A stretch of DNA of 64,000 bases from Blepharisma stoltei ATCC 30299 (Eukaryota; Protista; Ciliophora). The stretch lies in the NCBI GenBank assembly GCA_965603825.1, contig CBFDEM010000018.1:868001-932000 (forward strand). Direction: 5' to 3'. Positions 305 through 39,780 of this stretch are shown here, piece by piece (positions within the stretch are counted from its first letter, which is position 1; each line of letters begins with the position of its first letter). Below the pieces are notes generated by a model. That model searched no databases, was not told where the DNA came from, and was given only the letters and a program-made list of their open reading frames with translations. The position numbers and the translations under genes were made by a program.

Positions 305-1207
305 ATGGATAGAAAAACTCTTATCATCCTTGGCTTAATCGGAGCAGCTCTTCTTGTCACTGCAATTTTACTTGCAGTTTCCTTTGACAGTGTAGAATAC
401 ACTGAATACGGCCTTGACTACTCCTCAATATCAAAATCTGTCGGCACATCTCCTTATCTTGGTGGAATTTACCTATTAGGGATCGGCCACAGCTTTATCA
501 AGTTCCCAAGAACTGTGCTCACAATAGATTTTTCAAATGACGCAAAATCAGACCGCCCTCAAATTGAAAGCCGCACTTCTGATGGGCTTGAAGTCCTTCT
601 TGAAATTTCTTTCCAATACGAGCTTATTTCTGCCAATCTATACGATCTCTATATGAACTACGAGCTTAAATATCAGTATGTAATTGAAAATATTGCAATT
701 GATACCCTAACTGATCAAGCCACCAAATACACTGCCTATGACTTTTTCATGAACCGTGCTAAAATTGGCACAGAAATGCAGCAAGCACTGGACGCCCAAT
801 TAAGGAACAAGACTTACACCTCAGTACCATTTTTCCAGCTTCGTGACGTCGATTTGCCAGACGCTTTTGAATCAGCAATTCAGCTGTCTGAAGTGAAAAA
901 GCAAGACATTCAGAAAGCTAATGCAGAAATGAATAAAATTAAAGTTGAAATAGAAACTAAGCTGCTTAAGGCAAATCTCAATAAAAGTGTGACAATTAAT
1001 TTGGCTAATGGTGAGGCAGAAGCTATAAAGCAAAACAATGAAGCGGAGGTAAATGGGTTCAATGCAACTGAAATGGCTGCTATTTATGGATATCAAGCTC
1101 TTAAAGAGTCAACAAATATGACTAACCCAGATCTGTTGAACTATTTGAAAGCCAGCATTGTAGAGAACTATGATGGGGACAAGCTAGTCGTTTCTTTCAA
1201 AAAATAA
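305..1207 (+). CDS. SPFH/Band-7 (prohibitin/erlin-like) membrane protein
   Basis: N-terminal TM anchor; 'GGIYLLGIGHSFIKFP', 'SRTSDGLEVLLEISFQY', 'QLRDVDLPDAFESAI' followed by a coiled coil; TAA stop. Confidence 0.85.
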   Translation: MDRKTLIILGLIGAALLVTAILLAVSFDSVEYTEYGLDYSSISKSVGTSPYLGGIYLLGIGHSFIKFPRTVLTIDFSNDAKSDRPQIESRTSDGLEVLLEISFQYELISANLYDLYMNYELKYQYVIENIAIDTLTDQATKYTAYDFFMNRAKIGTEMQQALDAQLRNKTYTSVPFFQLRDVDLPDAFESAIQLSEVKKQDIQKANAEMNKIKVEIETKLLKANLNKSVTINLANGEAEAIKQNNEAEVNGFNATEMAAIYGYQALKESTNMTNPDLLNYLKASIVENYDGDKLVVSFKK

Positions 1208-1218
1208 TTTTAGTTAAT

Positions 1219-2736
1219 TTATTCCATATGGTCTATCAAGTTCTTAAATTTCAGCTTGTTTGCACCATAAAGTTCGTTTAGTGGATATACACGATTAGTC
1301 GATACTTGGAGAGGCTTGGGCACACGATTGTCTTGACGATTAAGTAAAGAGCTAGCTAAGGTTTTATAAGCCTTGACAAGAGAAGCTACTTGGTCTTCGC
1401 CTTCTTTAAGCTCGTTCAATTCGTTAATTGTTATGTTGTCTTTTTCTGTAGCATTTGCGTTTATTTTTTCAGTGAAATCAATAATTCCTTGCAGAGGCTC
1501 TTTAATTGATTTTGCAAGGAAATTAATCAAAATTAAAAGCACAGAAATAGTTATAACTGAACAAATCATAGTGACTCCTAATAAGACCATGCCATATTCT
1601 TGAATCTTTGCCTTGCTGTCCTCACTATAAGACATAATTTCGCTTTCTTTTACAAAAAGCATCACTAAATACCATCAGTCATCTCCAGCAACCTGAGTTT
1701 GAGCTACCACTGGATACGAGGCCACTTGATATATTTCATGATTAATTACAATATAATGGACTCCGTATGGATCCTTTTTCACTTCCTTCCAAAAGTCTGA
1801 ATCAGACAGCTTATTCATATTAGTTATATTATTGCTTCACCAGCCCCTTCCCTGCGTTTTTAATATATCGCCATTATTATAAACCACACATGTTTCTCCG
1901 CTCTGCAAATATTTTACCAATGAGAGGCCTTCATATATAGCAATAACTGGCAAATCAACAACTAAAACTCCAATTTTATTATTGCCCGCATCATAAAGAG
2001 GCATCATTAACGAAATAATAGTATTTGAAGGGTTTCCGATATGGTCTGGGTACCCTGTTGTTCCAATACTAACTTCTCCATGCTCTATATAAGTGCTATA
2101 TCATACAGTATCCATAGGATTATAATTTTTAGGCAATTGTGTGCCTGGAAATATCACTAGAAAATCAGCATTTTCAAAATATGCAATAAATCTTATTGCA
2201 ATTTGATGTGTGAGCGCAAGGACAATTCACCAAATATCATTTAGCCTTGATATCTTTTTCAGCAAATTTCTATCAAAACTGTCACTCAAATTATAATAAT
2301 TGCTGTATCGTAAGCAAACTCTTTGGTTTCCATAAACCGGAGGGTCTTTCACAAGACAGTTTTCAGGCAAATGTTGGTAATCAGTGATATTTGAAGATTC
2401 CAAAGAGTAAGCATTCTCATCAAAATCCATAGTCACTAGCATCTGCCTTATTAGCCCTCCCATAACTGAAACTTCTGTTAATTTTGAATATAAATAAGCT
2501 CCGGCTTCTCTGACAAGCCCATTCATATTGTCAACAGCCTGAGTTCCTTGTGTATTTTCGATTTTACTTACTGTATTTTCTTGTAAAAAATACAAATTGC
2601 TAAGCATAAGTGTGATAATCAATAAAAGTACAATAGCAATAGCCATTGCATAGCAGACCATCATTTGTCTTCGAATTGGTCAGGTCTTGGTAGCAGACAT
2701 TACATCTCGTCAAAAAGTCTTAAAGCAAAAGAACAT
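1219..2736 (-). CDS. TM-dCache-TM-HAMP receptor-like protein without output domain (505 aa with TGA=Trp)
   Basis: ORFs 2227-2664 and 1219-1665 are in one frame joined by TGA. Cache-like 'GYPDHIGNPSNTIISLMMPLYDAGNNKIGVLVVDL'; two TM helices; HAMP-like 'SIKEPLQGIIDFTEKI...EDQVASLVKAYKTLASSL'. Confidence 0.7.
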
Positions 2737-2985: not shown

Positions 2986-3645
2986 TTATTTATTACCCCA
3001 GCCAGCTTTTTTATAATTAAAAGGCATGCGTGGTCTTGCTATAAACTCTTCAACATGAGCTAAACTTCTTACATTGTCCTTATAAGAACTAAAATTTTGA
3101 GAATTTTCAGCTAAAATTCCTGGGCACATTGTCTCAATTTGATCAAGCAATTCAAATAAGTAAAAATCTATTCACGTCGGATGGTCTCCAATTAAGAATC
3201 TTTTGCCTTCTAAAAACGATCCAATTCTTATCAGCGTCGGTTTTAAGCTTTCCCTACAAAGAGGTATAAGTGACAAAGCATCAGAACTAAGGCATGGCTT
3301 TGTTGCAGCTGTTTTCAGATCCTTAAGAACTCCTTGCATCATGACTACATGAGTTTCTTCCATCATATTATTTCCCAGATAGCTTGGACTATATTTTGCT
3401 GCAACATATTCAAGTATTGCGAATGTTTCAGATAATTTGATATCTTCATCGATCCAATAAGGCAAATTAGGGAATTCCATGCCCAGGGTTTCCTTGACAT
3501 TAAGCCATTCACTTCTATCATAATCTGGAGCATCCCCTTGCTGATACATCATATCTTCAAAATCAACCTCCAGATGTCTCAGAAGCATCCTTATCGGCTC
3601 TGCATAACCCCTAAACGCCCAATACCCCAGGACAGGTCTTTGCAT
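2986..3645 (-). CDS. GST: Glutathione S-transferase, mu-class-like
   Basis: 'LGYWAFRGYAEPIRMLL', mu loop 'GDAPDYDRSEW', 'FPNLPY'; reading through TGA at 3172 gives C-terminal 'PFNYKKAGWGNK*'. Confidence 0.93.
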
Positions 3646-3668
3646 GCCTTATTATTATCATTTATATT

Positions 3669-3789
3669 AAATGTCAGGAGATATACAAGCATAAATTCCA
3701 CTAAAAATTACACTCCCGGACCTCCTATTAATGTGATATGGGATTGATGGTCACAAGACACTTAATTCTCATGAGGAGTTGTCCCATAT
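3669..3789 (-). ncRNA. Box H/ACA snoRNA candidate (two-hairpin, about 121 nt)
   Basis: Hairpin 1: lower stem AUAUGGGA/UCCCAUAU, pocket CAACUCC/CCAUCAA, upper stem UCAUGAGA/UCUUGUGA. H box ACAUUA. Hairpin 2: UAGGAG/CUCCUG and GAGUGUAA/UUAUGCUU. ACA followed by UUU. G-U pairs fit only the minus strand. Confidence 0.75.
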
Positions 3790-4809
3790 TTAATATTTGA
3801 ATTGACTTTTAATTTTAATTTTCGATGATTTCCCTTGCTTTGCTTTCATTTGTGCAGAATAAGAGTTCAAAGTTTTGCTCTTTTGGACGGGCTGCTTGTC
3901 TTTCGGGGTAGGTGATAAATTAGTTTTTTTAATGATTGCAGGCGAAAACGTGCACTGCTTGAGCTCTTCCTCTTCTTTTTTAGCCTTCCATTCTTCTATC
4001 TGTTTTTCTCTGTCTTTTTTGAGCTGATCTGCGAGCTCATATAGATTCTTTTTGTGATGCATCGGCATTTGTTTGGATTTGTCATCGATTCTCGGCTTAA
4101 AAGTGCAATCCTCTGTGATTCTGTTGTCTGGAGGAGTCGCCACTCGATTTTTTTTCTCTTTGGTTTGCTCTAAAGCAATTTCGTAGTTTCTTTTTATGAA
4201 ATCTTTAAAGTTCACTTGGGGTTTTGTCTGTTTGTTTTCTTCTGGGTTCGGCTGTGGGCTTGGTTTCTCTTTTTTCTTTGGAGTCGCCAGAGACCTGCCT
4301 TCTTTTTCCGCATACTTTACCATTAGGAGTGATTTTGGATCTAATTGCGGTTTAAACGAATATGCTTCTTCAAAGAATCTTTCTCTTTTTTCTTGTTTTT
4401 CCACTAAAAGCTTCCTGCCTTTTTCATATAAATTTTTAAAAATTACTTCAGCATCAGCTGTTGATAATTTATTTTTCCTCTTCGTTGAAGGTTGAGGAGT
4501 TTTGCTTGTTCGTGGAACTTTTGGTGAAGTTGGTAATTTAAATGTAACTTCTTCTATATCGAAATCTGGCATAAGGTCAGGAGTTCTTGAGTGTGGGTTG
4601 TCTGGAGAAAATGAAAACTCTTCTTCATCTAAAAAATCTAAAAATCTTTGATTCTCCGCTTTGGGAGGTTCAAGGACGAGAGGGTCTAATGTTGGGGATT
4701 TTGGAGATGATGAAGTAGGGGGAGGCGGAGGATTGATTGGGGCTGGAGATGCAAGGGGAGTAGATTTGAATAGGCCCAGAAGCTTTAGGGAATCCAGAGT
4801 GCTTGACAT
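3790..4809 (-). CDS. Lys/Pro/Ser-rich protein with repeated (C/Y)(T/S)F(K/S)P motifs
   Basis: 339-aa ORF; motifs YSFKPQL, CTFKPRI, CTFSPAI. Confidence 0.75.
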   Translation of the reverse strand: MSSTLDSLKLLGLFKSTPLASPAPINPPPPPTSSSPKSPTLDPLVLEPPKAENQRFLDFLDEEEFSFSPDNPHSRTPDLMPDFDIEEVTFKLPTSPKVPRTSKTPQPSTKRKNKLSTADAEVIFKNLYEKGRKLLVEKQEKRERFFEEAYSFKPQLDPKSLLMVKYAEKEGRSLATPKKKEKPSPQPNPEENKQTKPQVNFKDFIKRNYEIALEQTKEKKNRVATPPDNRITEDCTFKPRIDDKSKQMPMHHKKNLYELADQLKKDREKQIEEWKAKKEEEELKQCTFSPAIIKKTNLSPTPKDKQPVQKSKTLNSYSAQMKAKQGKSSKIKIKSQFKY

Positions 4810-4903: not shown

Positions 4904-5371
4904 TTATTTAGAAGACACTCTTGCTGATCTTCTGCAGTTTGGACAATCAGTTCGATGCTTTAGCCATCTCACGATACAGTCTTTGTGAAATACATGCCCA
5001 CAAGGTAATTTAATACCTTCAGCACTAGCGCTTAAACAAATAGTGCACTCCCTCATTGTTTGTCCCCTGTAAGTTGGGAATCGTGCAATTTCTTCATCAG
5101 AGAGCCCGAAGGTTGACAGTTCTTCACAATCTCTCCATAAAAATTCTAATTCTCTTGAAGGGACATCATAATAAGGGCATTGCTCATAAGAAAGCCCTTG
5201 TCCTAATTATTTTTTACTTTGCAGATTGGAAACATGGTCTATGACTGCTTCATATTCATTTTCCCAGTCAATGAAATTTAGGTTATAAGATCCAGAACCT
5301 TTAATGGGCCGATTATCTGCATATTCATTGATTTCCCTTTTTCTATCTTCTCGGTGGTTTCTTCTTTCCAT
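4904..5371 (-). CDS. RING-H2 zinc-finger protein (putative E3 ligase), one 15-nt intron
   Basis: Absent from ORF track. After splicing 5203-5217 it reads 'CTICLSASAEGIKLPCGHVFHKDCIVRWLKHRTDCPNCR'. Confidence 0.88.
5203..5217 (-). other. 15-nt spliceosomal intron
   Basis: GTAAAAAATAATTAG; removal eliminates an in-frame TAA. Confidence 0.85.
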
Positions 5372-38130: not shown

Positions 38131-39780
38131 TTACCAAAAGAAATTGCATTTTTCCTTAATATGTCTAACACCTCCTTCTAATGGTCTATCTCTTCTCCAT
38201 TTCCTGCACATCTCAGTCAATTGATGAGGATTTTCAAAGCTTACAAAGTTCGCCATAAGCTCTTCTTTCGCTTCAGTGGGCTGCCACTCTCCAATCCATC
38301 TGCTCTTCGTTATCCACAGCTCTTTTGCACTATCTAAATTAGGGATCACAGTCCCTCCAACCCACATTAAATGGTCAGGTTTTATATGCTCTTTATTTCC
38401 ATCACTATCAGAATGTGTGACGCTTGCCTTGACTTCTACTCTATCGACCCCTGCATCTTCAGGAAACCTATTTATTAGCCTATCTTCTAATATATCGACA
38501 ATGTCAGGAAACATTCCTCCTCCCCCAGTCAATAATATACAATTAGCCATTTTCTTACGGGCATCAGCCTGGTCATACGCAGAGATTGATCGTATAATCA
38601 TTTGATCTAAACTTAAAACTTTGTCCACTACAGGGTGAGTTGGAGATTCTAATTTTGTTTCAACCAAGTCATCTAAATAGTCGTCGGTGTCATAAGAAAA
38701 TGCTGGATGCAAGACCAGTGGTATTTTTGGTGGGCCTGAAGAAATTTCTAATAGAGAAGTGTGAAATAATGAGTGGGCGCCGACAATAAGGGCGGGGTTA
38801 TTGGAGTTGACACGTAATAAGCCACTTTCACTTGAGCATGCATAAGTGATGCTGTTTTCTTGTTGGAAAAATCTGCAGGCTTCTTTTTTTAAAGTTTCGA
38901 CTATGCGTAGTTGGTCAAGCCCATCAGCGTCTGGTCTGATTAAGACTCTCATTAAAAGGATATCAATATCTCTTCCAGCATAAAATTGTCTTACATGAGT
39001 TTTCGGATTGATGACACCTTCATCAATGCATATTACATTTATGTGTGAAGCTCCTATATCAACGACACAGGCACTTGGAACTCCAGCGCCAAATATCGCT
39101 GAAACGCTTTCTTGATGCAAAAAAATGCTTCTAAACCCTAAAGTTCTCAATAAAATATCGACAAGGGCTTTGACTTGCTCTTTATAAAATGCGTCCGGAA
39201 TAATAAGGACCACTGAAAATTGATGAAACATTTCTCTTGGAATTCTTAATATTCTCACAACTGTGTATTCTAAAATTCTTTCTAAATCACTAATAACAGT
39301 TCTTAATGATTGTGATTGGCTAATATTGAAATGCCCTCTTAAAATAGGCCAATGTTTTATATAAGGCTCTCCTGGTCCAAGATTGTAAGCTTCATCTCCA
39401 ACTAGATAAGGAGGATTATGAGAAGCTTCAGTTCTTCTTGGCAATGGTTCAAGTGCTGTTTCGCTTTCCCCTTCATTTTCTTCTTCAATTTGCATATCTG
39501 AAGCATTCCTCTTGCTTTTTGATTTTTTCTTTGGAAGTACAATTTTTGGAATGTGGTCTTTAAGGAAGCCAGTGCTTTGCAAGTAATTTTGCACCATTGA
39601 GTAAGCCTTAAATAAAGTTTCTGCATCACATGGTGGTAATGCTGATTGCAACTGAGTACCAGGTTGGCGATAAGCGATTACGTTGGGAATTGTATAAGGC
39701 TGCATTTGATTAGCGAATCCAACACGTAAATAAAGGGATCCTAAATGAACTACAATAGTCTCTGTAGGCTTGATATCCAT
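38131..39780 (-). CDS. ARP8: Actin-related protein 8 (INO80 complex)
   Basis: 'IVVHLGSLYLRVG...PNVIA', 'HQESVSAIFGAG..SACVVDIGA', C-terminal 'IKEKCNFFW'. Confidence 0.88.
   Translation of the reverse strand: MDIKPTETIVVHLGSLYLRVGFANQMQPYTIPNVIAYRQPGTQLQSALPPCDAETLFKAYSMVQNYLQSTGFLKDHIPKIVLPKKKSKSKRNASDMQIEEENEGESETALEPLPRRTEASHNPPYLVGDEAYNLGPGEPYIKHWPILRGHFNISQSQSLRTVISDLERILEYTVVRILRIPREMFHQFSVVLIIPDAFYKEQVKALVDILLRTLGFRSIFLHQESVSAIFGAGVPSACVVDIGASHINVICIDEGVINPKTHVRQFYAGRDIDILLMRVLIRPDADGLDQLRIVETLKKEACRFFQQENSITYACSSESGLLRVNSNNPALIVGAHSLFHTSLLEISSGPPKIPLVLHPAFSYDTDDYLDDLVETKLESPTHPVVDKVLSLDQMIIRSISAYDQADARKKMANCILLTGGGGMFPDIVDILEDRLINRFPEDAGVDRVEVKASVTHSDSDGNKEHIKPDHLMWVGGTVIPNLDSAKELWITKSRWIGEWQPTEAKEELMANFVSFENPHQLTEMCRKWRRDRPLEGGVRHIKEKCNFFW

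Follow-up and report, generated by a model that had tools for sequence, protein, structure and literature searches.

The window, the whole 64,000-nucleotide (64 kb) stretch of DNA that we analysed, comes from Blepharisma stoltei, whose somatic genome spans 41 Mb, reads UGA as tryptophan and has introns of 15–16 nt (PMC9942806). Two protein genes lie in tandem on its minus strand with a 144-nt gap between them, and this gap holds a candidate RNA on the same strand (3789–3669; predicted length 121 nt). The 5' base of the RNA, 3789, directly follows the stop codon of the upstream gene, at zero distance, and its 3' end lies 23 nt from the ATG of the downstream gene at 3645. The positions that the initial annotation gave for the gap, hairpins, boxes, TAA and ATG were all correct on re-check.

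3790–4809, minus strand: upstream protein gene, 339 aa, with FKP-type repeats; TAA at 3792–3790
3736–3789, minus strand: hairpin 1, with an 8-bp lower stem, a 7 × 7 pocket and an upper stem
3781–3775 and 3750–3744, minus strand: predicted pseudouridylation pocket of hairpin 1 (7 × 7)
3729–3734, minus strand: H box ACAUUA (ANANNA) in the single-stranded hinge
3675–3727, minus strand: hairpin 2, its pocket partly closed in the predicted fold
3669–3674, minus strand: ACA box (3674–3672) followed by UUU; predicted 3' end at 3669
3646–3668, minus strand: A/T-rich spacer of 23 nt, which could contain the GST start site
2986–3645, minus strand: Mu-class-like GST gene, 219 aa, with an in-frame UGA (Trp) at 3174–3172

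Structure and predicted target of the RNA

The candidate has a hairpin-hinge-hairpin-tail layout, with an ANANNA motif in the hinge and an ACA three nucleotides from the predicted 3' end. The upper stem of hairpin 1 consists of 8 pairs with one bulged base and lies 16 nt from the H box. Folding gave z = −2.5 for the minus strand (1 of 200 shuffles was as stable) against −0.2 for the plus strand, and each hairpin folded alone gave a z of about −2.7. When both strands of the 64 kb were filtered for two hairpins with H and ACA boxes, two sites passed, and 3789–3669 was far the stronger. A relaxed filter of the same kind let through some 15 sites, all weaker, in ~200 kb taken from elsewhere, and thus the H/ACA architecture alone is suggestive, not proof. 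The second site in the window (38690–38820, plus strand) is weak and probably due to chance.

We scanned both pockets against the genome's own SSU, LSU, 5.8S, U1, U2, U5, U6 and U3 RNAs. For hairpin 1, whose target had previously been left unassigned, this revealed a site at LSU 895–915, where the two guide strands would form 16–17 bp around U904/U905.

3774–3782, minus strand: 5' guide strand, 9 bp with LSU 907–915 (8 Watson-Crick, one G-U)
3742–3751, minus strand: 3' guide strand, 8 of 10 positions pairing with LSU 895–904 (two mismatches, one G-U)

This pairing exceeds the threshold of at least 8 bp for bipartite guides (PMC6049503), and its energy of −23.2 kcal/mol compares with −16.2 kcal/mol for the next best site among the rRNA and snRNA targets, a margin of 7 kcal/mol. 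Shuffling the targets into 1272 sets matched this score in 4.2% of them, or in 1.5% when at least 17 pairs were also required, which gives a moderate p of 0.015–0.04. The target string predicted initially, UUG(A/G)UGG-Psi-N-GG(A/G)GUUG, needs revision, as the duplex is not 7+7 and instead runs into the stems, leaving 2–3 nt unpaired. U904 and U905 correspond in the Rfam alignment to a bulge of two nucleotides within a long LSU helix, which we take to be helix 38, the A-site finger, presumably ~10 nt 3' of the equivalent of yeast Psi1004; the 5' guide pairs with LSU letters that depart from the eukaryotic Rfam consensus. Helix 38 carries many pseudouridines in yeast and is likewise the target of snR5, snR8, snR33 and snR81; the yeast sites that the paper lists do not include the one predicted here (PMC2794176). 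U904 lies 16 nt from the H box with 3 nt unpaired, and U905 lies 17 nt away with 2 nt unpaired, which is outside the 13–16 nt rule for the distance from target U to box (PMC8763049). Because H/ACA pockets can accommodate three or more unpaired bases (PMC6049503), we slightly prefer U904 as the predicted target. The best reading of these pairings is that hairpin 1 would guide pseudouridylation of bulged U904 or U905 in LSU helix 38. Hairpin 2 had no target above chance in the same set, its best scores equalling those of shuffles; a second target is not obligatory.

Searches for relatives placed the RNA in no known family. No Rfam profile matched at gathering score, the matches being at chance level (E 1–7), and genome BLAST found no second copy, so that the RNA is single-copy. 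Of the searches that the initial annotation suggested, the Rfam-type search returned no curated family, and the target search returned the LSU site for hairpin 1 and none for hairpin 2. A pocket-pattern match elsewhere in the genome (G000:C41:500184-500234) failed the combined stem-base and H-box pattern and is regarded as chance, with ~0.2 matches of this type expected by chance on our estimate. A metagenome pattern scan gave ten matches, nine of which lacked the flanking stem and boxes (the tenth, L014, from a human gut metagenome assembly, lies outside that count). We also rejected two other classes of RNA. A SECIS element is contradicted by the wrong geometry, an upper helix that is too short and an upstream ORF without UGA, and a scaRNA by a UGAG that lies within a stem and by the lack of any outstanding target among the snRNAs scanned.

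Taken with its fold and boxes, the guide complementarity supports the H/ACA call, and we conclude that the RNA is very probably a box H/ACA snoRNA, best read as a lineage-specific one. It resembles the TtnuHACAs of Tetrahymena in its hairpin-hinge-hairpin-tail form, its H and ACA boxes and its bipartite rRNA guide, but differs from them (124–136 nt; PMC3273799) in its length of 121 nt, in having no upstream element and in matching no Rfam family. That it is instead a structured and conserved element of a UTR or promoter, bearing H and ACA boxes by chance, seems improbable. The absence of an Rfam match, the false sites passed by relaxed H/ACA filters and the target p of 0.015–0.04 would all allow this, and the lower stem resembles the promoter element described below in both orientations (3.5 and 8.2 bits). 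Genuine promoter elements, however, exceed 15 bits, and a structured UTR of 120 nt would be very unusual for a heterotrich. Furthermore, the fold, the correctly spaced boxes, the guide match in a pseudouridine-rich helix (PMC2794176) and the conservation between strains coincide in this one RNA.

A small-RNA promoter element in Blepharisma

A motif, TCCCWTAA, is common to U2 (two copies), U6, U5 and one U1 gene at −55 to −61, usually preceded by ATG or AAG, and it resembles the Tetrahymena element AAACCCATAA (PMC3273799). Its genome-wide counts are near chance, so that it is informative by position only. Screening of motif sites brought up two U3 genes (L060, L080) and two RNAs that were classified by eye, one U17/snR30-like and the other H/ACA-like, which indicates that free-standing, promoter-led snoRNA genes exist in Blepharisma. 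The resulting set comprises nine small-RNA genes (five snRNA, two U3 and two other H/ACA-like RNAs), at which the element scores 15.5–23 bits in a leave-one-out test; the four non-snRNA examples were found through the motif itself and give no estimate of how often Blepharisma snoRNAs are without it. Upstream of 3789, by contrast, the best score within 300 nt is −0.2 bits, and no same-strand element with at most one mismatch occurs within 1.37 kb, the first lying at 5156. An element ~55–180 nt ahead of the RNA, a feature of independent ciliate snRNA and snoRNA genes, is thus absent here. Among intergenic snoRNAs of Tetrahymena the element was present on 22 of 27 (PMC3273799). The earlier idea that a tiny-intron genome needs an alternative route for its snoRNAs is weakened, since snoRNA genes of Tetrahymena typically stand alone with a promoter of their own (PMC3273799), and such genes also occur here.

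Several other RNAs came to light around this motif. In the snRNA loci L006, L007, L008, L010 and L011 the element stands 55–61 nt upstream of each RNA. The best U1 match (L009; G000:C29:114848-115008, minus strand) lacks the usual U1 5' end and an exact element, and in the weaker U1 match, L010, the element is present and the 5' end could pair with GTAATT. An element-led H/ACA-like RNA (L075, ~565–780, plus strand; G000:C11:1118582 onward) carries U17/snR30-type m1 and m2 motifs before its ACA and had no Rfam match at E 0.5 or better. A two-hairpin H/AUA snoRNA candidate begins ~100 nt after an element (L027, ~1600–1750, plus strand; G000:C1:399328 onward). Two tandem element-bearing units (L054; G000:C11:15180, minus strand), the first ending in a T run, share GGCAGCTCCAGCTG and ATACTGGAA, have no Rfam match and possibly represent an unknown small-RNA family. 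Two more element-led RNAs of ~80–110 nt (L050, G000:C6:263054, minus strand; L091, G000:C50:230855, minus strand) share GATACTTC and TGGCGCAGT, end in T runs and have no Rfam match, and L091 seems to include part of another unit. Neither L050 nor L091 showed a telomere-template sequence; the telomerase RNA of this species has been reported as not found.

The upstream gene, conservation and transcript contigs

The protein encoded upstream belongs to no Pfam family. A B. stoltei paralog is 68% identical to it and stops at the homologous codon, and we therefore regard the upstream TAA as a real stop. A frameshift that had shifted the stop codon up to the RNA was rejected, as the paralog has an equal number of codons to its TAA. 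Behind the paralog's stop there is no such RNA, only plain A/T-rich DNA. Both the paralog and a homolog with an in-frame UGA in another ciliate assembly lie behind RPA1, which suggests from gene order that the copy next to the snoRNA is probably a derived duplicate. If so, the link between gene and snoRNA would have arisen after the duplication. The annotated paralog gene (L112, 2501–3622) is 111 nt longer than the protein requires, with the extra on the 5' side.

A DNA run labelled as the same species and differing by 2.5%, probably from a second strain, has 36 changes in a 1417-nt contig and none in 3617–3837. The whole 144-nt gap is therefore unchanged, where about 4 changes would be expected (P about 0.02). 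In two other organisms, ~8% divergent, the order gene-RNA-GST is kept, and the one indel listed is a single-base insertion at 3650, outside the RNA. The closest contigs from orthologs elsewhere stop 4 and 8 nt past the stop codon, which makes them uninformative, and GST homologs elsewhere are at most 48% identical.

Two runs have contigs that extend across the locus. In X8, a run guessed to be RNA, one unspliced contig covers 4811–3112 with no joint across the gap and starts 2 nt before the upstream ATG. In X15, from another organism, one contig (3296–4704) likewise crosses the gap without a joint, and the uneven depth of this run and a contig ending 17 nt after the stop of a RING gene lead us to infer that it is RNA-like. 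A 94-nt gap just upstream is unbridged in both, although such a hole proves little. Four RNA-like runs contain 0.83–0.85 of the words, consistent with this extent. Assembled contigs carry no RNA ends, strand, level or poly(A) site; a spanning contig is not equivalent to a single transcript, and rare forms drop out.

Expression of the snoRNA

The missing element and the unbroken RNA-like contigs together favour hosting by the upstream transcript, as the initial annotation had proposed, and from these we infer that the upstream gene is the probable host transcription unit. That the snoRNA is made as a downstream part of that gene's Pol II transcript is, in our judgement, the likeliest reading, though about as likely as not. 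Because the RNA starts right after the stop, any 3' UTR of the upstream mRNA is snoRNA sequence. In heterotrichs the median 3' UTR is 21–26 nt, and some Condylostoma mRNAs, notably those ending in UAA, are polyadenylated right at the stop and have no UTR (PMC4967479; 10.1101/2022.04.12.488043).

By analogy with known snoRNA processing, H/ACA proteins would load on the nascent run-on RNA and the 3' end would be trimmed to ACA+3. The 5' end could arise in two ways. Poly(A)-site cleavage at the stop codon would give an mRNA with a 0-nt UTR and an intact snoRNA from one transcript; alternatively, read-through transcripts, lost as mRNA, could be trimmed 5'-3'. We think it quite unlikely that a single cut at 3790/3789 by the mRNA 3'-end machinery yields both a UTR-less, translatable mRNA and the snoRNA 5' end, which snoRNA proteins would then have to shield from 5'-3' exonuclease. 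If the cut fell ~20 nt farther downstream, hairpin 1 would be lost and the snoRNA could come only from 5'-trimmed read-through molecules, a version that we hold as tentative and doubtful.

The same snoRNA might instead be transcribed from a start site of its own that lacks the usual element, with a promoter in the last codons of the upstream gene, and some run-on might then give a snoRNA-led GST mRNA. We consider this rather unlikely. The element is absent in 5 of 27 intergenic Tetrahymena snoRNAs (PMC3273799), transcripts of this genome often overlap (PMC9942806 supplement), and RNA-like contigs bridge the 3' side into GST, which requires either a long GST leader or read-through. However, no promoter-like element was found upstream, and the 300 nt in question are coding sequence common to the paralog, which has no snoRNA.

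It is very improbable that the snoRNA sits in a rare long intron (GT 3806 to AG 3648, 159 nt), whose removal would fuse the upstream ORF to GST in a stop-free frame (554 aa; a one-in-three chance): an A precedes the AG by six bases, a feature shared with tiny introns, and the published caller accepted only two-digit gap lengths and could not have seen it, but the GT-AG pair is weak, its donor GTCAAT being poor against the GTAA start of the few tiny introns compared and pairing poorly with the U1 5' end, the X8 and X15 contigs are unspliced (though contigs lose rare forms), and the TAA at the paralog's codon gives the upstream protein a normal end.

Hosting by the upstream transcript has precedents. 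In Plasmodium, the PFS9/PVS9 snoRNA lies in the RPL7a 3' UTR (PMC2656528), Entamoeba snoRNAs lie within UTRs (PMC3542256), and the latter paper also cites a Drosophila H/ACA-like RNA. The presentation of UTR hosting as an alternative route is weakened by these reports. As in Plasmodium and Entamoeba, the Blepharisma snoRNA lies on the same strand 3' of a stop, in what would be mRNA-linked RNA. PFS9, in contrast, is a C/D snoRNA located ~600 nt downstream of a ribosomal protein gene's stop, whereas the RNA here is H/ACA and at zero distance, and its probable host, unlike RPL7a, has no ribosomal link and belongs to a genome with typical UTRs of ~20 nt. The arrangement also recalls hybrid mRNA-snoRNAs and snoRNA-capped polyadenylated RNAs, in which mRNA is joined to a snoRNA end and 5'-3' decay can act, although those hybrids come from intronic hosts after failed splicing and the Blepharisma locus has no evident intron (PMC10557570). 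We found no second stop-abutting snoRNA in the 266 kb of genome scanned, no report of a zero-distance stop-snoRNA arrangement in the part of the literature searched, and no snoRNAs reported in either the Blepharisma genome paper or the supplement to it (PMC9942806). UTR hosting is therefore already known in kind, and the zero-distance arrangement is a variant of it.

If confirmed, this would be a snoRNA whose survival depends on transcription continuing past the end of a duplicated protein gene unrelated to it, in a genome where introns measure 15–16 nt and UTRs ~20 nt. The single-cut route, if true, would need neither splicing nor a promoter, and it would be open only to organisms whose 3' UTRs can be reduced to nothing, such as heterotrichs. 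One small locus could then serve to probe both snoRNA release by poly(A)-site cleavage and the placement of heterotrich poly(A) sites, and the Blepharisma small-RNA promoter element offers a handle on unannotated RNA genes in this genome.
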